A stretch of 64,000 nucleotides of DNA, from assembly GCA_964035545.1 (NCBI GenBank), contig OZ037769.1:15530633-15594632 (forward strand), written 5' to 3'. The notes under the pieces are model-generated. The model did no database searches, had not been told where the DNA came from, and was given only the letters and a program-made list of their open reading frames with translations. The position numbers and the translations under genes are program-made. The first letter of the stretch is position 1. Each line of letters begins with the position of its first letter. This stretch comes from Bugula neritina. Its lineage: Eukaryota > Animalia > Bryozoa. Shown one piece after another: positions 25,201-61,500 of the stretch.

Positions 25201-26164
25201 AGTGCTTGAACTATAGTACTAGAAGGCTAATCTATCCTTTCATAATAATCAAATGTGATTTCCATGTTTACCCAGGCACTAGCAAATCATAATCTTCAGT
25301 AGATTTTTATACACTTGATGTTATTTCTCAACTTTTCATTACTGCAAATACCCTCCATCCAGTTTTATAATTGAACTGTTTGTACATCCTTGTATTATTT
25401 TTCACATTCCACACCACCCACCTTTTTTATCAGGCATTTCAGGTGTATTTACATGCATACATTCCATGTTTAGATATAATATATATTTATTTTCATACTC
25501 CACAATTTTATTACTTTCTATACCAGAGGTGGGAAACTTCAGTGCACAGGGCCAAGATCAGTAGTTGGCCAAAACGAAGGGTCGTATGTTGAATTGCATT
25601 GTAAGGTAACCAAACCTACACCGTGCTAATTAGAATGCAAACTACAGCTTTTCACCATCGCCGGGAAGCCTTTCTAGACCACATTTGCAGGCACTGTAGT
25701 GAGCACACTGCTCACAGCAAGAACTATTAGCCGAACTACAATATGCAACACTGGAATTGCAACTGACGACAGAAGCAAATACCTGACACTAACGAAATTT
25801 GATGCCAGACTGGCTTATACAATGCATTTTTCTCCAATTTTATCAGTTACGAATAGGTATTATTGCATTGTATTACTGTTTCTATACAAGCATTCAAAGA
25901 AAAAGCCGAGTTCAATAGAAAATGCTGAATTAATTTTAGCATTTCATCACGTCCTGTGTACAACAAATATCACTCATCTCAATTATATACAACATAAAAT
26001 TTAATTTGTTATTTTAGCAGAATATTTATTTCAGTAAAGAACTAACAGAAAAATGTAATGAATTATTCAGGACGTTCAATCCAGTTCTGTGCAGTCGCCA
26101 ACCTCCTTAGCAATCTACAATGGATAAACAAGACATTATTATAAATCACCATTACAGTGATCTA

Positions 26165-26296
26165 AGATGTCATTTTCATTTGGTATGCACATTAGCTGAA
26201 TAATACTAACATGCGACCGTTGGAGAACAGTTGTTCTAGGACAAATATTGACTACCAAAGTACTAAGAATTGTGCCAGATAGCTTCGATATGTCCA
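26165..26296 (-). ncRNA. Box H/ACA snoRNA, target unassigned
   Basis: Hairpin closed by GGACA/TGTCC, H box AGAACA, second hairpin (GCATGTTAG/CTAATGTGC), ACA 3 nt before the predicted end; located in the last intron. Confidence 0.7.
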
Positions 26297-26480
26297 GATC
26301 GGTATATAGATGATATGTCCAGATCTTATATAGATAGAACAATTACTTCACACCTACCAATAAATAAGGAAATGTTCTCCACAGTAGTTTGCCATTATTG
26401 TGTGAGCAGCACCTGAAATACAAGGTTAAAATTGTAACAGAAATAGGAACACTAATAATTAGGAAACTTTTGTAGCAATA

Positions 26481-26546
26481 GGCTCAGAATCCTCGAAAGT
26501 AGCTCATTATATATCGTTCGCCCAAACACTTAGTTACATCACAGCC
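26481..26546 (-). ncRNA. Box C/D snoRNA, target unassigned
   Basis: GGCT-GTGATGT (variant C box)...CTGA-GCC with a terminal stem; intronic. Confidence 0.7.
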
Positions 26547-26716
26547 AAGAAGAACCAGATAGTGATAGCAGCATTAACTAACCGAAGTGAAGAATCCTCA
26601 ACACCAGGTAGAGCAGAGTTACTTGGCAGCTATAAAGTCTGGCACCTGCAAAAGGAACTGAAGTGTACGACAACTTTTGAAACTTGCTCCGGCACTATAC
26701 ACAGTAAGATACATTA

Positions 26717-26784
26717 GCCATCAGACGAACAAGATTCTTATATATAAAATCACGAGGGTCAACACGATATGGTATCATCAGAGC
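26717..26784 (-). ncRNA. Box C/D snoRNA, predicted guide for the 18S Am1383 (human numbering) equivalent
   Basis: C box CTGATGA, D box CTGA. The D guide TCTTGTTCGT pairs with 18S ACGAACGAGA (one G-U pair); D+5 falls on the second A of GAAC. Confidence 0.75.
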
Positions 26785-26916
26785 TAATACACTGAAGGGA
26801 TCATCACTGAAGGATAATAAACACTTACCTGTAACTAAAAAGTGTCACAACAGCCAGGCAACCCGCACACCCTGCAACAGAAACACCTAGATTAACAAAG
26901 CAGTACAAATGGCTTC

Positions 26917-26953
26917 CATCACATACAGTTGGTGGTGCAAATCATCAGCGCTT
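26917..26953 (-). pseudogene. 3'-truncated copy of the SNORD33-like snoRNA (no D box)
   Basis: Matches 28901-28937, then is joined to unrelated intron sequence at the duplication breakpoint. Confidence 0.75.
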
Positions 26954-27109
26954 CAAGAAATAAACCCACAAATCATTTAAAAAGCTAACAACTTACTAAT
27001 GATACCTCAGATGACCAGGTGAGAAGCAGCACGAACAGCACCTGAAACACAGCAATGACGTTATGTAGCCAGCAGAATGACATAGCAGCATTACTTGAAG
27101 CTATCACTA

Positions 27110-27185
27110 GTTTGCGTTCAGATATTCGTGGTTTGCAGTATCAACAGGGAACTCTGCGTGGTGCATGAATTTCATCACATCAAAC
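27110..27185 (-). ncRNA. Box C/D snoRNA guiding the 18S Gm1328 (human) / Gm1271 (yeast snR40) equivalent, copy 1
   Basis: C box GTGATGA; guide CATGCACCAC followed by D' CAGA; D box CTGA; flanking stem GTTTG/CAAAC. Complementary to 18S GUGGUGCAUG. Confidence 0.85.
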
Positions 27186-27352
27186 TCACAGGTTATTATT
27201 ACACATGAATCTTGGGTAACATACCTTAGGCAAGGGTGGATCAGACAGCAGGTGAAGTTGCATCAGACAGGTAGAAACATCTACAATAACAAGGGAACCA
27301 GTGAGATACGGACACAACTAAGATTAAAACACGTGAAAGAAATACAAGCGAA

Positions 27353-27439
27353 CTGTCAGACACCCAACAAAGATCCGTCTCAGGACTCCTGCCTCAGGAC
27401 TAATTCTGCGGAACGGCTGTTGGATTCTTCATCATACAA
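27353..27439 (-). ncRNA. Orphan, hairpin-structured box C/D RNA, copy 1
   Basis: C box ATGATGA, D box CTGA; internal nested stems TCCAACA/TGTTGGG, CCGT/ACGG, TCCTG/CAGGA. Confidence 0.75.
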
Positions 27440-27588
27440 GCTTAGAAAACACATGAAATAGATTAGAAAGCAATTCTTACCTAACAGAGATTGGAGACCT
27501 GCATCTAGCCATATTCTAAAACAGCGAAAAACACAAAATTACTAATTGGACAAAAGTTTAAAAATAGAACTAACTTTAATTGAGAAAT

Positions 27589-27660
27589 ATGGCCATCATT
27601 TGGTTGATCCAGCCTACACAGACGAGTCTAAGGCAATAAAACTAATCATTTTGTAGCCAT
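27589..27660 (-). ncRNA. Box C/D-like snoRNA complementary to the 18S rRNA 5' end, copy 1
   Basis: Variant boxes ATGATTA / ATGA; terminal stem ATGGCTA/TGGCCAT; guide GGCTGGATCAACCA versus 18S UGGUUGAUCCUGCC (one mismatch). Confidence 0.7.
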
Positions 27661-27868
27661 TAGCATTTAAACAATGAAACAGTTTTTGCAGCAGTCACAC
27701 TTGCAATAAACTGCTTTTACATAAATGTCTATAAAAACCTACAGGGTTTTCAATTGGTTAACAAGATCCAACATCACAAATGGTCATTCCACATTTCTAG
27801 TATTCTAAAACAGTAAACCAAACACTGCAGGTGCCAAAACTGAGTAAATGCATGCATATTGAGATGCT

Positions 27869-27946
27869 AGGCAGCATCAGCCTAAAGGTGGCAATGTGTT
27901 TCATGTATGTCAAGTGAACTTGTTATGATACCATAATCTTATCATA
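27869..27946 (-). pseudogene. Degenerate paralogue of the 28S A807/A817 double-guide snoRNA
   Basis: Retains the D box and central region, but the C box and both guides are altered (CCACCTTTAGG). Confidence 0.65.
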
Positions 27947-28093
27947 GAATTTAACATACCTTGAACTTAAAGTTGAGTGGATTTTTCATATGGCTGAATT
28001 TTAACGCCATAAGGCAACTCCCACATCCTGCAACAGAAACACCAAGACTAACAAAGCAGTACAAATGGCTTCCAACATCCCTTGTAGAGAGGA

Positions 28094-28172
28094 GGCTGCA
28101 TCAGACCCGAAAGGTAAAGATCACTGAACCACGTTCATCACGGAATAAATATATTTCATCATACAAGCAGCC
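28094..28172 (-). ncRNA. Box C/D snoRNA guiding the 28S Gm805 (yeast snR39B; human SNORD2 site) equivalent
   Basis: Perfect stem GGCTGC/GCAGCC, C box ATGATGA, D box CTGA. Guide ACCTTTCGGGT versus ACCCGAAAG; D+5 is the G of CCCG. Confidence 0.88.
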
Positions 28173-28325
28173 ACACAAGCACTAGGCTGATAGCTACACA
28201 ACTTACCAGTTAGCCAGTAGTGAGGTTGCCGGAAGGAGACAAGCGCAGCCCCTAAAATCGAAAAAGATCTTGTATAAGCAGCATGAAGAGCACAACACAT
28301 GGAGGAGAAGCTACTGCAAGACAAA

Positions 28326-28394
28326 GGATCAGACACAAAGTTGTAATCAGATAATATCAGGTGAAACACGGGTTCCGGAGAACCCATCACATCC
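28326..28394 (-). ncRNA. Box C/D snoRNA with D' guide to 28S UGAAACACGG (predicted Am at the yeast A646 / human Am1323 equivalent)
   Basis: Stem GGAT/ATCC, variant C box GTGATGG, guide CCGTGTTTCA followed by D' CTGA, D box CTGA. Confidence 0.8.
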
Positions 28395-28562
28395 ACAGAC
28401 CAGAAACAAATGTAATACTTATTAATATTTACCTGGCTGTGGACAGAACATATCAAGACAGAACTTTAGGAAAATATCCATCAGTTCACCACCTGCAATA
28501 ATAAATGACAAGATGAGAAAAAATACTGACAAGTTTTAAACTAAAGCAATTTGCACAACATG

Positions 28563-28693
28563 AGTTGTCTAAGCTGTAATAGTTAGCCACTGGGCATTAG
28601 AATCAGCACAACAGCATATTTACAGCCAGGTTTATCTCTGCACGCTAAACGCCAGTGGCAGCAGAGTATTGCTGCCCTGGAGCTGGGGTGCAT
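28563..28693 (-). ncRNA. Box H/ACA snoRNA guiding the 28S Psi2944 (yeast snR37; human SNORA10 site) equivalent
   Basis: Hairpin TGCAC..CCAG-GGCAGCA/TGCTGCC-CTGG..GTGCA, H box AGATAA, second hairpin GCTGTAA/TTACAGC, ACA plus 3 nt. Pocket strands CCCAGCT and CGTT fit AACG-U-G-AGCUGGG. Confidence 0.88.
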
Positions 28694-28857
28694 TACACAA
28701 CTAGAAGATTCTATTAGTTTAACTTACCATATCCAGTTTCAAACAGAATGGCATTACTTCAACAATAGTTCTTTCTGGCCACATCATCTAAAATCAAACA
28801 CTACATTAACAAAGGGGAAGATAATACAACCTGAAGAACATGCAGCAAGAGTAGAAA

Positions 28858-28937
28858 AAGCTCAGCGTTATGTTGATTCAGTAATATACAAAGTTATCAT
28901 CATCACATACAGTTGGTGGTGCAAATCATCAGCGCTT
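28858..28937 (-). ncRNA. Box C/D snoRNA guiding the 18S Um1326 (human SNORD33) / Um1269 (yeast snR55) equivalent
   Basis: Stem AAGC/GCTT, C box CTGATGA, guide TGCACCACCA followed by variant D' CTGT, C' GTGATGA, D box CTGA. Confidence 0.8.
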
Positions 28938-29090
28938 CAAGAAATAAACTCACAAATCATTTAAAAAGCTAACTTACTAATGATACCTCAGATGACCAGG
29001 TGAGAAGCAGCACGAACAGCACCTGAAACACAGCAATGACGTTATGTAGCCAGCAGAATGACATAGCAGCATCACTTAAAGCTATCACTA

Positions 29091-29166
29091 GTTTGCGTTC
29101 AGATATTCGTGGTTTGCAGTATCAACAGGGAACTCTGCGTGGTGCATGAATTTCATCACATCAAAC
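29091..29166 (-). ncRNA. Box C/D snoRNA, 18S Gm1328-equivalent guide, copy 2
   Basis: Same sequence as 27110-27185. Confidence 0.85.
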
Positions 29167-29352
29167 TCACAGGTTATTATTACACACGAATCTTGGGCAA
29201 CATACCTCAGACAAGGGTGGATCAGACAGCAGGTGAAGTTGCATCAGACAGGTAGAAACATCTACAATAACAAGGGAACTCGTGAGATACAGATATAACT
29301 AAGATATACAGATATAACTAAGATTAAAACATGTGAAAGAAATAAAGGCAAA

Positions 29353-29439
29353 CTGTCAGACACCCAACAAAGATCCGTCTTAGGACTCCTGCCTCAGGAC
29401 TAATTCTGCGGAACGGCTGTTGGATTCTTCATCATACAA
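29353..29439 (-). ncRNA. Orphan hairpin-structured box C/D RNA, copy 2
   Basis: One visible substitution relative to 27353-27439. Confidence 0.75.
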
Positions 29440-29583
29440 GCTTAGAAAGCGCATGAAATAGATTAGAAAGCAATTCTTACCTAACAGAGATTGGAGACCT
29501 GCATCTAGCCATATTCTAAAACATCGAAAAACACAAAATTACTAATTGAACTAATGGTTAGAATAGAAAATTGAATCAGGAAT

Positions 29584-29655
29584 ATGGCCATCATTTGGTT
29601 GATCCAGCCTACACAGACGAGTCTAAGGCAATAAAACTAATCATTCTGTAGCCAT
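29584..29655 (-). ncRNA. Box C/D-like snoRNA complementary to the 18S 5' end, copy 2
   Basis: Near-identical to 27589-27660. Confidence 0.7.
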
Positions 29656-29881
29656 TAGCATTCAAACAATAAGACAGTTTTTGCAACAGTCAGTTTATTT
29701 TTTTGTAAAAAAACACTTGCAATAAACTGCTTTTACATAAATGTCTATAAAAACATACCAAGTTTGCAACAGGTCTACAATATCACAAATGGTCATCTCA
29801 CATTTCAGTATTCTAAAACAGTAAACCAAACACTTTGCAGGTGCCAAAACAATTGTGTAAATGCATGCATATTGAGATGCT

Positions 29882-29958
29882 AGGCAACATCAGTCGAAAG
29901 GTGGCAATGTGTTTCATGTATGCCAAGTGAACTTGTTATGATGCCATAAACTTGCCAT
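29882..29958 (-). pseudogene. Diverged paralogue of the double-guide snoRNA (D guide largely intact, C box and D' guide degenerate)
   Basis: GCCACCTTTCGA-CTGA retained; no RTGATGA. Confidence 0.6.
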
Positions 29959-30114
29959 AGAATTTAACATACCTTGAACTTAAAGTTGAGTGGATCTTTC
30001 ATATGGCTGAATTTCAACGCCATAAGTCAATTATTACACTAGTCTAAAACATCAACAAAACGCGTATTTTAACTACTCAGCAGCTAATAAATTATTTTTT
30101 TGGTGCACTAAGAT

Positions 30115-30193
30115 GGCAGCAGCTATCAGTCGAAAGGTGGTAATATGTTTCATGTATCTCAATTGAACTATGCTGACTCATCACGTTGCTGCT
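30115..30193 (-). ncRNA. Double-guide box C/D snoRNA for the 28S Am807 and Am817 (yeast numbering) equivalents
   Basis: C box GTGATGA; D' guide GCATAGTTCA plus TTGA pairs with UGAACUAUGC; D guide ACCACCTTTCG plus CTGA pairs with CGAAAGRUGGU; terminal stem AGCAGC/GCTGCT. Confidence 0.88.
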
Positions 30194-30420
30194 ATTGAAG
30201 AATTAGTATTTATTTGGTTTTAATTAGGGTTTTCTACAACAATTATTTGGATAGTGATAAAATTTAACATACCTTGAACTAACAGTTGAGTGGATTTCTC
30301 ATATATCTTGACTTCAACAACATGGGTCAACTATTATACATTAAGCTGGTCTAAAACATCAACAAAACGCGTATTTCAATCACTTGGCAGCTACTAACTT
30401 ATTTTTCTTTGTACTAAGAT

Positions 30421-30502
30421 GGTAGCAGCCATCAGTCGAAAGGTGGTAATATGTTTCATGTATCTCAATTGAACTATGCTGACTCATCATGTTGATGCTA
30501 CC
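30421..30502 (-). ncRNA. Double-guide box C/D snoRNA, second intact copy
   Basis: Core identical to 30126-30183, C box ATGATGA, with a different terminal stem (GGTAGC/GCTACC). Confidence 0.88.
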
Positions 30503-30639
30503 AGAGATTTAATTTAATGGTTTAAGAAGCATTGTGTCGAGTAAATGACAAGAAAATTAACTATGGATGCACCGCGTTTTGACTAATATTAACAGATGAA
30601 AATACACGTCCACTCACCTCGAATACCAAGTTGAAAAGG

Positions 30640-30810
30640 ATGAAACTGCCCACCTCTGTTTCAGAGTGCAAGTTCAAGCGTGCGCGCGCTGATTTTACTA
30701 CAAATTTCCATAGAATGTAATTTATAGCCTCAGATTCTAATTATTCATGTTTCCGACTTGACCAAACGAATATTACCTTGAAACAGGGGTTAATAACACT
30801 TTTTGCAAGA
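30640..30810. promoter_or_regulatory. Compact bidirectional promoter shared by the snoRNA host gene and COG4
   Basis: Divergent starts less than 300 bp apart; GCGTGCGCGCGC (NRF1-like) at ~30678-30689. Confidence 0.55.
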
Positions 30811-30933: not shown

Positions 30934-33900
30934 ATGTCTACTATAGAAGAGATACAAGCTGAGTTAAGAGCTCTCACAAAACATGAAGTAAGAAATTCAA
31001 ATCTAAAATTAGTTTTCATTTTTATTTTATTTCATTATTTTAATATTTTATATTAAATTTATTTATTTAGTAATTTAATTAAATATAATTCAAATTGAAT
31101 ATATTTGCAGTTGTATTTTTACTTTTAGACTCACTCTTGGCATTAAACTTATCACTTACAAGTACTCGAGTTTCAGTTTCTGTTTCAGTTTGTCTTTGAA
31201 TTGAATCACTAAGTCTAACACTTGTTTCCTTAACTTTAATCTGTCAAGATAAATGAAGGTCTAAATTAAGCTCAATTTTAACTTTAATCTTTAGTTACTT
31301 AAGTCATTTTTAGCTCATTATAATCTTTGAATATTATTTCATGTGATGCTACTACTTTAACTTTAAGATAAAAATTGTAAATAAAGTTTAACCTTCTTTA
31401 GTATTGAATTAGTCTTTGTAATTGTTATTTTATAACTGATTTTAAGGACTTGAAAGTTTTTTCAGTAGTTTTATTCAAGTTGTATGACATTGTTAACTAA
31501 ACTTATGCCTTTCCTTGACTAGCACATCTCTGTTTAGGCTATGACAAACTTGACTTGACCTGATCGTAGCTTTGAAATCAACTTTGAGCTGGCCTAAAAG
31601 TCAGTAATTGTTCTATGACTAATTAGCTAAAATAACTTTACCGAAACCTAAACTAAATAAAAAATCAAACTACTTTAGTTGATTATAGTTTGGTTCTAAA
31701 ATTATTCGATATTTTAATCAAGTTTGTAAGTAGTTGAACCATATTTTTACTTGGTAATATGTCTAGTAGTTTGTATGAAATACACTGTTTGTCCTTGGGC
31801 AGGATTAATGCCATTGTGTAATGTTATTAGGATGAGATAAATGAGAGTTTAGATGCTCTTCTCCAAGAACGGGGTGTCCTCGAAGATCAGCTTGCATCTC
31901 TACATAAACTGATGTAAGAATCCTTCCATAGCTTTGGATTGTATATTTTTTGTAACAGTCAAGGTTATAATGAACGTTATATGTATAACAGTTAAGGTTG
32001 TAATGAAATAAATATCGGTCCATTGCCACTAATCAATTAACCTATGCTGTTACTCTGTAAGCATCTGCTTTAGGCCGAACCTCGGATTGATTCACAACGA
32101 TGCCAAGCAACTTACGGGTATGATATCATTCACCTCTCAACTGGCTGACAATGTTAGTGGGAAAGTTAGACAGTTGGATTTGGCAAAGGTATCAGTTTAT
32201 CTAGTTTTGTTATCTTGTCATTGAGGTAAAGTCAGACTGTTTTATTCCCATATTTATGTTGGAAGTGTGTATTCCTCTGCGTTGTTAGAAATAATTCTCG
32301 CGCTTTGTTGAAACTCTCAATTTTCTTACTTGTGTAGGGTCTTTCATAGCTGTGATTATAATTTATAAGCGGTGATTTTAAAGCTTCCCACAAAGCATAC
32401 ATGTATATAATGTATTTATGTGTATACTTAGAGTCGGGTGTTGGCTGCATCTCTTAGAGTGGAGGATGTGTTAGATCTTAAATTCTGTACAGAGGGAGTA
32501 CAGACCGCCCTACACGAAGAGTCATACGAAAAGGTATAGAATACTCCTATAGTAGTTATCTTCTCTCTATTCTGTATATTCTACTCTTACAGTAGTTATC
32601 TTCTCTGTATTCTGTATATCATACTCTTACAGTAGTTATCTTCTCTCTATTCTGTATATTCTACTCTTACAGTAATTATCTTCTCTCTACTCTGTATATC
32701 ATACTCTTACAGTAGTTATCTTCTCTCTATTCTGTATATTCTACTCTTACAGTAGTTATCTTCTCTCTATTCTGTATATCATACTCTTACAGTAGTTATC
32801 TTCTCTCTATTCTGTATATTCTACTCTTACAGTAGTTATCTTCTCTCTACTCTGTATATCATACTTTTACAGTAGTTATCTTCTCTCTATTCTGTATATC
32901 ATACTCTTACAGTAGTTATCTTCTCTCTACTCTGTATATCATACTCTTACAGTAGTTATCTTCTCTCTACTCTGTATATCATACTCTTACAGTAGTTATC
33001 TTCTCTCGCAGGCAGCAGCACTGATTCACCGGTTTCTTTCCATGGACGAAGCTGTACTACAGTTGAGTGAAGATGCAGCAGAGGGTGAGTGTAGTTAGAT
33101 GTCATTGTATTATATGTGTTGAGCATGACAGTTGTGTTATTAGATGTCATTGTGTTGTGTGGAGCATATAATACTCGACTCTGAGTTTTGGGAGTTTGGG
33201 ATGGCTTTAGTTGCAGTAGAAGTTGTCATCCCTGTAGTTTTGTTTTCTCGTGTGAAATACAATGTTAATGCTCTGCTATGCTACAGCATTAAGACTCACT
33301 CTTGCTGCAATGTGATTGGCTATTTCCGCAGGAAGTAGTTTGAAGCAGTCGTTCACAACGCTGCACGAGGCAGCGGCTAAACTGAGATCTCTGACTCACT
33401 CTAAGTTTGACAGCGCTGTCAATTCCGGGGACGTGGCTTCTGTTGAGAGGTTCTTCAAGATCTTCCCACTGCTGGGCATCAAGGAGGAGGGGCTTACCAA
33501 GTTTGCTAAGTGGCAATCGGCTCAGGTAAGTTGACCACGCCCACAGTTAGGTAGACCACACCCACAGTTAGGTAGACCACACCCACAGTTAGGTAGACCA
33601 CACCCACAGTTGGGTAGACCACGCCCACAGTTAGGTAGATCACGCCCACAGGAAATAAACCATACCTGAACGATGTTGAAGTTTTTAGTTTTTCTGCTGC
33701 TTCCACAAGTTAGTGTTTTATCTCGGTTATTGAAATAAAGAATGTCGAAAGATGTTATCCAATAAATGGAGACATTTAAAGTTTTCACTATAGTAATGTT
33801 TGAGTTTAACTACTAGAAGTACTACAGTGCACTATGAGTTATTCACTCACTCGTTCAGGTGCAGAGTATAACTAGTAACTAGTAATATTTCAAACTTCAA

Positions 33901-36900
33901 CATGTCCACTCAGATTGAAGCGTAGGTTCTGGCAACATCAGTGTTCTCTCTGTCTATAGATCTCATTGTTTTATTATTTTCTACAGATTTCAGAAAAAGC
34001 CAATGATAGACTGAAAGTCTCCTTAGCCATGCAGTCTACCGACAAGAGGGCAGGAGTTATCTTCTCTGATCTCATGGAATCTCTATTTGAGAATATAGCT
34101 AAAGCCATCGAGATGCACCAGCCACTGATTGAGACTAAATATGGTAAGCTCTTACACATAACCTACTCTTCTAGTCACATGGCATTTACTTACTATATCT
34201 TTGCTGAGTTCTTGAAAACAGTTTTCTATATACAAAATGTTTTTTAATTTTGACATATTTCTGTTTAGATCACACTTTATGTAGGTCATGTTATATTTAG
34301 GTCACACATTATGTAGGTCATGTTATATTTAGGTCATGGCTGGCTGCTGACATTTGCAAAATGTGTTCAGAAGGAGTGTGATCGTCAGGCTAGACGGATA
34401 TTAGAAGAGTTTAAAAGCAGACGTCGGTTTGATCATGTGATCAGTAAGATACAAGAAGGCATGTCACACAAATCTGCCAACTCTGAGAAGTATGCTATAT
34501 GTTACAAGTTATAATATATATGTTACTAGTTATAATATATATGTTACTAGTTATAAAATATACGCTGCAAGTTATAAAATATATGCTGCAAGTTATAATA
34601 TATATGTTACTAGTTATAATATATATGTTACTAGTTATAATATATATGTTACTAGTAATAATATATATGTTACTAGTTATAATATATATGTTACTAGTTA
34701 TAATATATATGCTACTAGTTATAAAATATACGCTGCAAGTTATAATATATATGTTGCTAGTTATAATATATACGCCACTAGTTATAATATATATGCTGCA
34801 AGTTATAATACATATGCAACACAGTATAATATGTTGACATATGTAGTAATATATTGTAGTATATGTAGTAGACTAATTAGATACTTGGTAAACTCTGTGT
34901 GCTGTACTGTCTACTTATACACTCTCTGTGTTTTACTATTTGGTAATATTCTGTTTGCTTGGAATGAAGATCTCCTCTGAAACTCTCCCTTTAATCCATA
35001 GTTTTTCATATAAAGCCATTCAAGGTATTTCAACAGACTAATGGTATTCAATATAACTTCTGGTAAACATACCGTCTGTTTCTTGAACAGATACGACCCA
35101 AAAAGCCTGGATGTGCTGCTCGGTGAAATGACTATGATGAATGCCAAGTGTGAGCTTTACCTCCGCTTTCTCAAACGCCGAGTTACTGTGAGTTTCCGGA
35201 ACTTTCTAGCATTTCCTAGAACTAGTAATACGTTGATATGTTGATAGAACTAGTAATATACGGATAATTATGTTGATAGAGCTAGTAATATGTTGATAGA
35301 ACTAGTAATACGTTTCAGTCAGACCTCGAGAATGTGGCATTGGAGAAAACAGATTTAGAATCGAATCTTGCGGCGACTGACGACTTAGTGAGAAGATGTG
35401 ACCTGTGCAAGGAAATGCAGGTCATCATAGGATATTACATCATGATGGAGGAGTATTACATGAGAGAGATGGCTTCCAAGGCAGCATCACTAGACGTGTC
35501 CGACGCTGACTCTCTCACCTCCAGTATTGTTGATGACACGTTCTACTTGGTGAAGAAGAGCATCCGGTATTACTACGCCGTATTACTACGCTGTATTACT
35601 ACTCTGTATTACTACACTGTATCACTACTCTGTATCACTACACTGTATTACCACTCTGTATTACTACGCCGTTATCACAGGAGAGCACTCTCCAGCTCCA
35701 GTATAGATGGCGTCTGCGCCGTCATAAACCACGCCTGCTCCGTGCTGGACGAGAAGTTCATAGAGTTACTCAGAGGGAGGCTGAAGCTGGGCTATCCTTC
35801 CGGAACCTTCTCTCAGGCGTACACTCTCGTCTCCTCCAGTATTCAGCAGGGCAAGATTCAGTCCTCCGACACGGAGCAGAGCCGTCTGCAGTTTCTGGTG
35901 GGTGTTTCCTGATCCACCCCCTCATGGTGTTTCCTGATCCACCCCCCCTCTCATGGTGTTTCCTGATCCACCCTCTCTCATGGTGTTTCTTGATCCACCA
36001 CCTCTTACACGTTCTCATATGTTATCTTCTTCAGTGTGTTCTACACAATATAATGAATCCTGATCCACCACCTTCTCTCATGGTGTTTCACGTTCTCATA
36101 TGACATATGTTATATTTTTCAGTGTGTTTTACACCACGTAACAAATATATTTACCTACGTGTTGCTATCTGTGTGTTGACTTCAGTCTAAGAATTACAAT
36201 CCATAAAAATGATAACAGCTCAAAATAAAGCTAAAAGTTATGTCATGAACATCATTACATTAAATTCTAGCTGTGTTTTATGTCGAGTTTTGTTTGTTTT
36301 GTAACATTTTTTCTTGTAATCTGCTACTAATACGTCTGCATATTGTTGTGTGATACTCTACTAATACGTCAGCATATTGTCTTGTAGCTAACGCTGAACA
36401 ACTCGGAGGCGAGCAGTGAGAATATTCAGACTCTGAAAAGCAGCATCGAATCAGAGATTCCCAGACTCCTCAGCTCAGATAGTAAACACACAGATGAGAA
36501 ACTCGAGGTAGAGAGATTTCTTTATCACAGCTCCACTTTATTTAACCCTTAATGTTTTAGACAGTTTTGTCTGTACAGAAAGTACTGACTTAGCTACCAC
36601 ATATTCACTGTGTGTTCCCATATTAGATTTCTGTTCAAACGGTATAGTGGAAGTTTTAAAGTTTAAACTAATAAGTTTGATACATGATGGTGTAAGAGTG
36701 TGTTTGTCTAAAAACCTCCTTTTAGACTCATTTGACTTGTGTTTATGCTCATTCACTGCTGTTTTGTATTAGCAGTATTTATTTTGAATATAGTGGTTAT
36801 ACAAGCTATCTGTCATTTAATTGATGTATTGATTGATAATCTTTTTAGAGTTGTCTGACCGATTTGGGTCAAATGACCAAACGGTTCAAAGACCTCGTTG

Positions 36901-58500: not shown

Positions 58501-61500
58501 TAAAACATAACAGAAGTGTAATTGGAGTCAAAACAACCCGGAAGAACTGTTTAGTTGGTAGAGATGTTTAGCGATGAGAGAGAAACTTTAGAGTTTGTAC
58601 CTCTGTGACACATTGCCATCAGAGAGAGAGCACCTGCAGTGACTTGCCAAGATAAATTTGTTGGTGTGAATCAGGGCTGGAGAATTTTGTGGTGAGTTGG
58701 AAGCCTTAGAGGGATTATTAGTAGCTGGTGATTAGGAAAGAGATAAATAAACAGTAGCTAAGAAAATAAACATTGAGGAGAGGAGAGATGATTGTTAAAC
58801 AGAAGCTGAGCTGATATACACTACATACGGCTTTCTAAACAGAATATTTCAGCAATCATCTCCCCATACGTATTTTAAAATACCAAGTTGAATAATCAAC
58901 AGCAAGTCTATATATTACTAACAACATTATTCCATAATATAACTTATATAACAAAATAATATAACCACAGTTAGGTATTGGAACTAAAATGATACTTTTC
59001 CACTTATTGTTAGTATAAATTATAAACAAAATTCTGATATGGGCTGAACTATTTACTTGGAAAATAGTTTTAATAAAATATTTTTTTTAATTTTTATAAA
59101 TTATCCTATTTTAATATAATCTATCATATTAAACAAAAAACGCCACATGTTTCAGAGATGAGATTTTGAAACTGTAAACACCTGTTATATACCTGTTATA
59201 TGTACATGTAAGAGGGGAAGAAGTTAGAGCTGAATGACCTAATTTGAGTGATAAAGGTGGATGTTTGATCAGGTGAAAATACGCCCTGTCAGGTGATCAC
59301 ACCTGGATGTTGGTGATTCCAATACAAGAAACTAATATCAAATAAACAACAAATTTTAGAACTGAATTCCATATGAATATCTCCTGACAACTGAAGCACT
59401 GTCTTACTTTCTCTCTAACAGAACTCTATGACAATCATACACTGAAAGTGTGGCTACAGACAGAGTTGACCAGGAATATGCTATGGCACTGGGCCCCACC
59501 TTAAATAGCAAATCAGTGAGATACCCTACGACAGACAGACAGACAGACTCCCTACAAGTGCAGTGGACGTCTGCGGTAAGAATGTCAACATTTCATGTCC
59601 TCCAGACTCCGCCTGCTGCGGCTGGAAGGGCAGGTGAGGATTGTAGCCAGCAGAGAGAGAAACTGAGAAAACTTTTTTGCACAATATAAAAATGAGAAAA
59701 AGTAGATTGTTACTTCTTGATTTATTGCTATGAATATAAATACCCTGACAGATAATTAGATGTAAACATGAATAATATAAATACTGTTGTATAGAAGACT
59801 CTGGCTGTACGAATAATAACACAAAACACCCCCTCTCTTTCCTGCACCCCCTTCTGAACTCCCTCTACACCCCCTCCCTTTCAATTATACTCAATTCTAT
59901 GAATTTGAAAGTAATGCCATAAACATATCCTGAATGTGAAAAGTAATGCATAGAGTAATGTGAAGGTAATGTGATCAGTAATGTGTATAGTAATGTGAAG
60001 GCAATGTGTATAGTAATGTGAAGGTAATGTATACAGTAATGTGAAGATAATGTGTATAGTAATGTATACAGCAATGTGTATAGTAATGTATACAGCAATG
60101 TGTATAGTAATGTATACAGAGTAATGTGAAAGTAATGTAATCAGTAATGTGAAGGTAATGCATACAGCAACGTGAAGGTAATGTATACAGCAATGTGTAT
60201 AGTAATGTAAACAGCAATGTAAAAGTAATTCAGCTAAAACAGGAGAAGAAGCCCTGTAACTATGAGATAAAATTAATAAAACACAATTCACCAACAGCTG
60301 GGAGGTTCTACTCACTGTTTGAGCTAAGAGAAGCTCTTTGGGCGGGGCCTGCAGATGCTCCACCCCACCATACTTGTTCAAGATGGCGTCTTTCTTGGAA
60401 TCTTCGTGTGTGTCTTTCCTCTGTTTGTATTCTCTGTTTAGGAGTTCCAGCTTGGTCGGGTCTGCCTGTAGGTGTACGTCTGCCCCTCGTTCAAACGCAT
60501 CCCACGCAAACTCTACACATGGGGAAAATACATGAATATAATGGAATAGATAACTAAATATAGATATAATGGAATGGAATATGATGGAATAATTATGATA
60601 TTGCCTAATGTTTGATGATAATAGTTGTAAACAGGATGCAGCTTTGTACCAGAGAATGCATATAACATAGAAAGACATAAACTCTAGCAGCTAATGCAAC
60701 AGAAACTTCCAGATAAACAAATGGTTTTAAACCATGTTGATTTTCAAAAAACTAAGTGAAATAAATTTAAGTTTGCTTCTTTAGAAAATCATTAAGAGTA
60801 TCTATTTTATTAAAAATTAACTGAATAAATGAGTGAATATAAGCAACACAAAACATTGCGAGTGTGACATTATTTACTATTACTTGTGCTAGCATTCAGT
60901 GATGAGATAGAATTGTAGACAGCAGGGTATTAGAGTACGGCTAGGACTGCATTCAATTATGTATGCGATATATTTCTGTATGTGTTTTGTTTCTGATGTG
61001 TTATGCTTTTGCAGACTCATGCATTTCAGCTAGTAAATATTACACTCACACTTGACACAAGCGTTGACAAGATGGTGAACCAAATTTTTGATTAATAGCC
61101 GGTTTGTGGTGTTTTCGGACCCCTAGCAATGCATAATTATCGTTACATAACACTGTTGATTGTTGCGTTGAAAAGTAAATGACAGATTTTGGCTTGTAAA
61201 AACCGACAGAGAGTTGGAATGAGTTGGCGGTGGTCACAGCTAAGTGACTGACTGCACAGCCCTTCCACTCCACCCGATACGCGTAGTCGCAGCTCATTGG
61301 CTAAGCTCCCCCGTCAGGAAACGAGTATGAAATATGCACAAGATTGAGACGGAGAGATGAAATTATTCTGGTTTGATGGATGAGAAGGAGAATTAGCATA
61401 AACTGGCTGTCTTTTCTCTGCTATGTCGGCAGACAAATACCAGAGCTTTAGAGATACGCTGCAGCAACTGGACACGCCTTTCTGCTCATTATCCTACCAG

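Follow-up and report, generated by a model that had tools for sequence, protein, structure and literature searches.

A predicted non-coding multi-snoRNA host gene beside COG4 in Bugula neritina, and its candidate guide for 18S U8

Non-coding host genes of small nucleolar RNAs (snoRNAs), such as vertebrate SNHG1 and GAS5, form a class with described features (PMC7277114, PMC6954239). In Drosophila, Uhg genes hold 42% of the C/D snoRNAs of the fly (PMC11014333), and Uhg4 hosts seven snoRNAs, H/ACA RNAs among them (PMC9710044). A locus that very probably belongs to the SNHG1/GAS5/Uhg class lies in the genome of Bugula neritina, within a stretch of 64,000 nucleotides (G000:C5:15530633-15594632, from a 216-Mb eukaryote genome) that is called the window here. 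The genes of this genome are rich in introns and its 18S is divergent, which fits an invertebrate. The locus occupies the minus strand and is flanked by two plus-strand genes, one of the carboxylesterase family and COG4, and its splicing and expression are predicted from the DNA. The support comes from pairing of the guides with the species' own ribosomal RNA (rRNA), from selection on snoRNA cores and not on exons, from the distance between D box and splice acceptor, and from a syntenic orthologue conserved only in the cores and in a CCTTT start.

Layout of the locus and its predicted targets

In the predicted transcript, 18 GT-AG introns, 134-267 nt long, separate 19 exons of 21-110 nt, and splicing would leave an RNA of ~1.04 kb (Table 1). 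Each intron holds one element. Intact C/D RNAs occupy 13 of them (introns 1, 2, 4, 5, 6, 7, 9, 10, 12, 13, 14, 16 and 17), H/ACA RNAs two (8 and 18) and decayed elements three (3, 11 and 15). An initial annotation of this DNA had read it as a non-coding polycistronic snoRNA host, which the lines of evidence named above (pairing, core selection, spacing and synteny) support. Its counts of exons, introns and elements were identical, and the two signals it had named, a 5' terminal oligopyrimidine (5'TOP)-like motif and a poly(A) signal, are present at 30640-30633 and 26030-26025, the start site itself being predicted. Two details are corrected, however: the acceptor of intron 7 is better placed at 28788, and the C box of intron 16 at 26781. 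It also missed that the 18 elements collapse to only 11 families because of internal duplications of 2.0 kb and 0.3 kb, much of the array being recent duplication, and it overlooked the 18S U8 guide, which is the most unusual of the elements. On the features tested the locus belongs to the class, with one snoRNA per intron and a non-coding spliced product whose exons are not conserved. The first open reading frame (ORF) of the spliced model has 4 codons and the longest 61, a length reached or exceeded in 32% of shuffles.

One clue is the regularity of the signals around the elements. All have a GT donor on one side and, on the other, an AG acceptor rich in pyrimidines, and in the 13 C/D copies the C and D boxes are closed by a terminal stem, with compensated variant boxes in I4 and I12. 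The distance from the end of the D box to the acceptor is 71-82 nt in all but one of the 13 copies; the exception, at 94 nt, carries a small local repeat. A spacing of this size is preferred for intronic C/D snoRNAs. A strict motif test (donor, C box, D box, then an acceptor 65-100 nt later) gives 13 matches on the minus strand, none on the plus and 1 in the remaining 118.7 kb, although this contrast with the background is inflated, since the pattern was fitted to the host region. Shuffles (n = 300) under the same test give a mean of 0.11 matches and a maximum of 1. At the 5' end, the TCT/5'TOP motif is kept at the start of two related hosts that are described below, as CCTTTC in the orthologue (20 nt before the first donor) and almost identically in a second host.

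In the proposed mechanism, the host and COG4, lying head to head, would share a promoter, and RNA polymerase II would start at the TCT/5'TOP initiator. Splicing of the 4.6-kb transcript would follow, with the exons serving as splicing scaffolds, and the released introns would be debranched and trimmed to cores protected by small nucleolar ribonucleoproteins. The ~1-kb spliced RNA, with its first ORF of 4 codons, would probably be removed by nonsense-mediated decay, as the class would lead one to expect. The C/D RNAs would guide fibrillarin to 2'-O-methylate the nucleotide five bases away from a D or D' box, and pseudouridylation would fall to the H/ACA RNAs; most of the rRNA sites concerned are conserved among eukaryotes. 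Over time, snoRNAs would be gained, duplicated, lost and moved between hosts.

Targets were scored on the species' own rDNA (18S, 5.8S and 28S; L007), the unit having been located via 5.8S, and numbered from Rfam-defined starts; C/D targets were called by the D+5 rule, as the nucleotide five bases from the D or D' box. As the initial annotation had anticipated, the guides pair with this rRNA. Eight of the nine C/D families form 10-14 pairs, I5/I13 being weak, and pairing is also found for the first pockets of the two H/ACA RNAs, which both show a hairpin-H-hairpin-ACA layout with 14-nt first-pocket spacing. Against 400 control 20-mers taken upstream of CTGA, the box-anchored guides rank in the top 0-3.5% for 8 of the 9 C/D families, the exception being I13 (18%). 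The sites named at the outset (18S Um1326, Gm1328 and Am1383 in human numbering; 28S Gm805, Am807, Am817 and Psi2944 in yeast numbering) are all recovered. Psi2944 and Psi2865 are assigned by offset from the A-loop.

Except for 18S U8, the guide sites are homologous to positions already mapped in yeast, fly, human, plants or planarian. Mapped sites include 18S Um1266, Gm1268 and Am1323 and 28S Gm935, Am937 and Am947 in planarian (PMC11649923), and 18S Cm1303, Um1357 and Gm1359 and 28S Am796, Gm1005, Am1007 and Am1017 in fly (PMC11014333); yeast Gm805, Am807 and Am817 correspond to human Gm1522, Am1524 and Am1534 (PMC11542601). The spacing agrees as well: 18S 1306/1308/1363 matches planarian 1266/1268/1323, and 28S 956/958/968 matches fly 1005/1007/1017 and yeast 805/807/817. 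The guide of I16 forms 14 Watson-Crick pairs, and an accessory element of I7, conserved in the orthologue, pairs with 18S 1292-1299 just upstream of its target.

Some candidate targets were rejected. The letters that would match 18S A167 in I16 belong to the terminal stem once the C box is set at 26781, and those of a 14-bp match between I9 and 18S 1136-1149 form the RNA's own hairpin. The species' own U2 and U6 were also retrieved as targets, and box-anchored matches to them never exceed 8 pairs. A 15-bp match of I10 (28132-28146, minus strand) to 28S 259-273 includes the probable C' box and may be due to chance. In the second pocket of I18 (26172-26230, minus strand), GGTCGC and TGCATAC are kept in the relative; a possible target of this pocket is 28S U3330 (yeast 2955 by offset). 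A partial SNORA16-like copy on a different chromosome (L002 1500-1620; G000:C9:10123721-10123856) is without the 5' pocket and is probably a decayed transposed copy.

Table 1. Positions of the host gene, its elements and other features in the window
Feature	Position	Strand	Remarks
Host transcript	26005 (approximate)..30638	-	19 predicted exons; splice sites predicted by consensus
Exons 1-5	30638-30618, 30350-30273, 30043-29973, 29812-29759, 29515-29481	-	predicted
Exons 6-10	29261-29206, 29022-28987, 28787-28728, 28492-28433, 28251-28207	-	predicted
Exons 11-15	28027-27960, 27804-27743, 27515-27481, 27280-27225, 27041-27006	-	predicted
Exons 16-19	26871-26829, 26645-26583, 26412-26358, 26114-about 26005	-	predicted
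TCT/5'TOP-type initiator TCCTTTTC	30633..30640	-	predicted +1 at 30638; 21 nt before first donor
AATAAA poly(A) signal	26025..26030	-	sequence motif
I1, double-guide C/D	30420..30503	-	D' to 28S A968 (yeast Am817, human Am1534); D to 28S A958 (yeast Am807, human Am1524); family has two copies in orthologue L026
I2, C/D	30116..30194	-	second intact copy of I1 family
I3, decayed I1-family copy	29880..29961	-	C box and D' guide degenerate; D guide nearly intact
I4, C/D	29584..29655	-	boxes ATGATTA/ATGA; 7-bp terminal stem; predicted target 18S U8
I5, C/D with long hairpin	29350..29443	-	tentative 18S C1371 (human Cm1391 by spacing); D' box CTAA
I6, C/D	29092..29170	-	D' to 18S G1308 (human Gm1328, fly Gm1359); orthologue at L026 6745
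I7, C/D	28858..28938	-	D' to 18S U1306 (human Um1326, fly Um1357)
I8, H/ACA	28563..28692	-	first pocket to 28S U3319 (yeast Psi2944 by A-loop offset), 5+7 bp, 14 nt from H box; first hairpin conserved in L109
I9, C/D	28324..28396	-	D' to 28S A786 (fly Am796; human Am1323 by spacing)
I10, C/D	28094..28173	-	D to 28S G956 (yeast Gm805, human Gm1522); same guide in L109
I11, decayed I1-family copy	27866..27949	-	guide mismatches at -2 and -3
I12, C/D	27589..27660	-	second copy of 18S U8 guide
I13, C/D	27350..27443	-	I5 copy with intact CTGA D' box; tentative 18S C1371
I14, C/D	27111..27189	-	I6 copy
I15, decayed	26917..26956	-	I7 5' half, cut at duplication boundary; without D box
I16, C/D	26713..26789	-	C box 26781; D to 18S A1363 (human Am1383, planarian Am1323); orthologue at L026 6509
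I17, C/D	26480..26546	-	D' box ACGA; guide to 18S C1252 (fly Cm1303; human Cm1272 by spacing); orthologue retains ACGA and pairs at -2
I18, SNORA16-like H/ACA	26165..26297	-	first pocket to 28S U3240 (yeast Psi2865 by A-loop offset), 4+9 bp, 14 nt from H box
Tandem duplication, ~2.0 kb	26917-28026 vs 28901-30039 (span 26917..30039)		~93-98% identical
COG4 first coding exon (predicted)	30934..30987	+	head to head with host, ~300 nt from host start; arranged alike in L026
Minisatellite arrays in COG4 introns	32550-33010, 33520-33620, 34490-34850		generate spurious repetitive ORFs
SLU7 splicing-factor gene exon (Pfam PF11708)	59881-60678	-	

Core selection, the orthologous locus and competing readings

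The 2-kb duplication offers a view of what is maintained. Between its copies the snoRNA cores differ at 3/281 positions (1%), the exons at 12/218 (5.5%) with 3 indels and the intron flanks at 28/395 with 9 indels. Splice signals differ at 2/86, the decayed element at 8/82, and none of 14 splice-site columns has changed in the 0.3-kb duplication. The cores are set apart from exons (P 0.006) and from flanks (P 0.0001), whereas exons and introns are not set apart from each other (P 0.5). Selection acts on the snoRNA cores, and the exons diverge like introns. In X1, the sole public run that holds the host stretch, none of 23 substitutions hits the intact cores, which make up 29% of the locus.

Another line of evidence comes from a distant relative. 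Three public contigs (L026-L028), reached via a COG4 fragment, show the carboxylesterase gene, a gap and COG4 in the same order. The relative's coding exons are ~70-75% identical, whereas the gap aligns in snoRNA cores only, and the host exons, searched one by one, gave no match to the orthologue beyond chance. The orthologous host in L026 carries 6 of the 11 snoRNA families, minus-strand and intronic, in a changed order, and it supports the unusual D' boxes TTGA and ACGA. An extra C/D RNA that is absent from the window lies at L026 5531-5428 (minus strand); no target was found for it. The sample of the relative also contains a second non-coding multi-snoRNA host (L109 9306-6150, minus strand), whose cargo comprises SNORD36-, SNORD57- and snR75-like RNAs besides relatives of I4, I8 and I10. 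In this second host the only ACA of the Psi2944 guide (8451-8392, minus strand) overlaps the apparent acceptor.

As judged from these alignments, the host locus is old and its cargo mobile, because the syntenic orthologue shares families and L109 carries relatives of I4, I8 and I10. The locus and its pyrimidine start persist between two coding genes while the exons turn over completely, and the snoRNAs duplicate, decay, reorder and move between hosts, as with the three families found in a different host in the relative's sample.

Several observations weigh against a spliced snoRNA host. Two donors, 27742 and 26582, are weaker than the rest. The I5/I13 guide is weak, with 18% of control guides matching its score, and folds back on itself; no target was found for the D sides of I5, I6, I7, I9 and I17, and none could be assigned to the second pockets of I8 and I18. 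The initial annotation had proposed Rfam as a check, and there no element reaches the gathering score: a search of the window gave zero matches at that level, and single-element searches lifted none over threshold. Below threshold, 18 of 20 matches are to snoRNA or archaeal small RNA (sRNA) guide families and 17 are on the minus strand, the best having an E of 0.0077 (SNORA16). Finally, the variants of X1 are clustered, and X1 is possibly the assembly's own sample. X1 is without joints and covers introns and flanks evenly; it was treated as DNA, and neither junctions nor RNAs are observed.

Could the splice sites be incidental, even though the snoRNAs are genuine? In this scenario endonucleases would cut the RNAs from an unspliced polycistronic precursor, as in plants or yeast. 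X1, being DNA-like, yields no spliced reads, but the scenario is made highly improbable by the donor-acceptor bracket at near-fixed distance around every element, by the near absence of change in splice columns (2/86 and 0/14 in the duplications) and by the same layout in the orthologue and L109. It is just as improbable that the host encodes a small peptide, or belongs, as a long spliced 5' or 3' stretch, to a coding gene. ORFs of 60-61 codons are present in the spliced model. However, 32% of the shuffles reach such lengths, the ORFs lie downstream of many ATGs, indels build up in exons as fast as in introns and a match to the orthologue is found for none of the exons; moreover, a start and an AATAAA belong to the host itself, and the genes on either side are on the opposite strand. 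An even smaller chance is left to the idea that the 2-kb duplication is an assembly error and that the true gene has ~12 introns. X1 has no contigs on 29039-29400, which would fit. Nevertheless, depth over the twin stretch, where the copies collapse, is about double (213 vs 95-120), 2-7% divergence and indels distinguish the copies, and one contig spans the unique part between them. A spliced non-coding host with one snoRNA element per intron is the preferred reading.

A guide predicted to address the 5' end of 18S rRNA

Of the 14 positions of 18S nt 5-18, 13 pair with the guide of I4 and I12. The boxes of these RNAs, ATGATTA and ATGA, place a U-A pair in the kink-turn where a G-C pair is usual. 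I4 and I12 are the sole copies of this guide detectable in the genome, and it matches no Rfam family. A metagenome pattern scan, in which most of the 120 matches are chance matches in prokaryotic genes, found the guide at the identical D-box distance in introns of four other eukaryote contigs. The copies in L100 (within an intron of PRPF8) and L109 share the variant boxes of I4/I12. L090 carries the guide in three SF3B3 introns with canonical ATGATGA/CTGA; the third copy, which lay outside the model that detected it (E 5e-8), has a degenerate C box. This organism is distant, its SF3B3 being 51% identical to the SF3B3 piece from the window's genome. The guide of L044 has canonical ATGATGA/CTGA and stands beside an snR60 RNA above gathering score. 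The two boxes of the U8 guides thus co-vary, as ATGATGA/CTGA (G-C) or ATGATTA/ATGA (U-A), and the spacing from guide to D box is invariant in 8 of 8 eukaryotic copies, with one free base and U8 at position 5. The marine-sample contig L044 (1-1134) is apparently another non-coding multi-snoRNA host, its successive introns holding the snR60 RNA (52 bits), the guide for U8 and a SNORD16-like RNA.

Is 18S U8 a known site of methylation? It is absent from the fly, planarian and plant modification tables, including their human and yeast columns, and the first 18S methylation in these tables is Am28. Literature searches for Um8 returned nothing relevant, two structure papers being without mention of it in the main text. 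Um8 is presumably present in kinetoplastid ribosome models, and the novelty of the site is uncertain because of it. An archaeal-looking contig (L105 900-947; L125) holds a compact 49-nt C/D sRNA with the guide GGATCAACCA one base before CTGA, which suggests that an archaeon targets the corresponding position of its 16S. Because this archaeal-type sRNA carries the same guide, the site may be ancient. It may also have been overlooked since RiboMeth-seq reads end-proximal positions poorly.

Perhaps, then, I4/I12 belong to an undescribed snoRNA family, scattered over distant genomes of invertebrate type, whose task is to methylate 18S U8. This nucleotide lies at the first helix of the central pseudoknot, within the stretch bound by U3, and the site would be ancient and overlooked. 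Such a reading is a serious possibility, though one that falls a little short of probable. A less likely view, which we consider doubtful, is that the family, like U3, acts as a chaperone for the folding or processing of the 18S 5' end and leaves U8 unmethylated. The footprint on 18S nt 5-18 lies within the listed U3 pairing region, 18S 5-22 (PMC2655684), and the absence of Um8 from the tables and columns just mentioned would be expected. However, the guide-to-D-box spacing is invariant in the 8 copies, as a methylation guide requires. I4/I12 resemble U3 in pairing with the 18S 5' end, but they differ from it as 54-nt intronic C/D RNAs with a D-box-anchored guide and without U3 architecture, and there was no U3 match among the Rfam results. 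If U8 is indeed methylated, the reaction must either compete with U3 binding or take turns with it while the small subunit is assembled. I4/I12 offer a testable candidate for a new rRNA modification, for which this gene holds the genome's sole detectable guides.

Comparison with known hosts and families

The counterparts of these guides in human are presumably spread over RPL13A, GAS5, SNHG1, SNHG12, EIF4A2 and EIF4G1. At the level of single RNAs, the guide elements match the consensus of the Rfam families snR60/Z15, Me28S-Am982, Me18S-Gm1358, snoZ221/R21b and SNORA16 letter for letter, whereas the host elements score 21-29 bits against gathering scores of 35-50. They would work like named families (SNORA16, snR60/Z15, Me18S-Gm1358) without scoring as members. 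I1 and I2 unite the Am817 and Am807 guides in one RNA.

The host design itself is already known, and this gene is a further member that is not orthologous to any named host. It shares with SNHG1 (U22HG) and GAS5 one snoRNA per intron, disposable exons and, as predicted here, a non-coding spliced transcript with a pyrimidine start (PMC7277114, PMC6954239). However, those genes carry 8 and 10 snoRNAs, all C/D, whereas the Bugula neritina gene has 18 elements in 11 families and of both classes. Drosophila Uhg1-Uhg8 are likewise invertebrate non-coding hosts, but with another snoRNA set and other genomic neighbours, and a sequence relation was neither found nor expected. The locus adds a case from a poorly annotated invertebrate lineage, and it displays how a design shared with SNHG1, GAS5 and the Uhg genes evolves.

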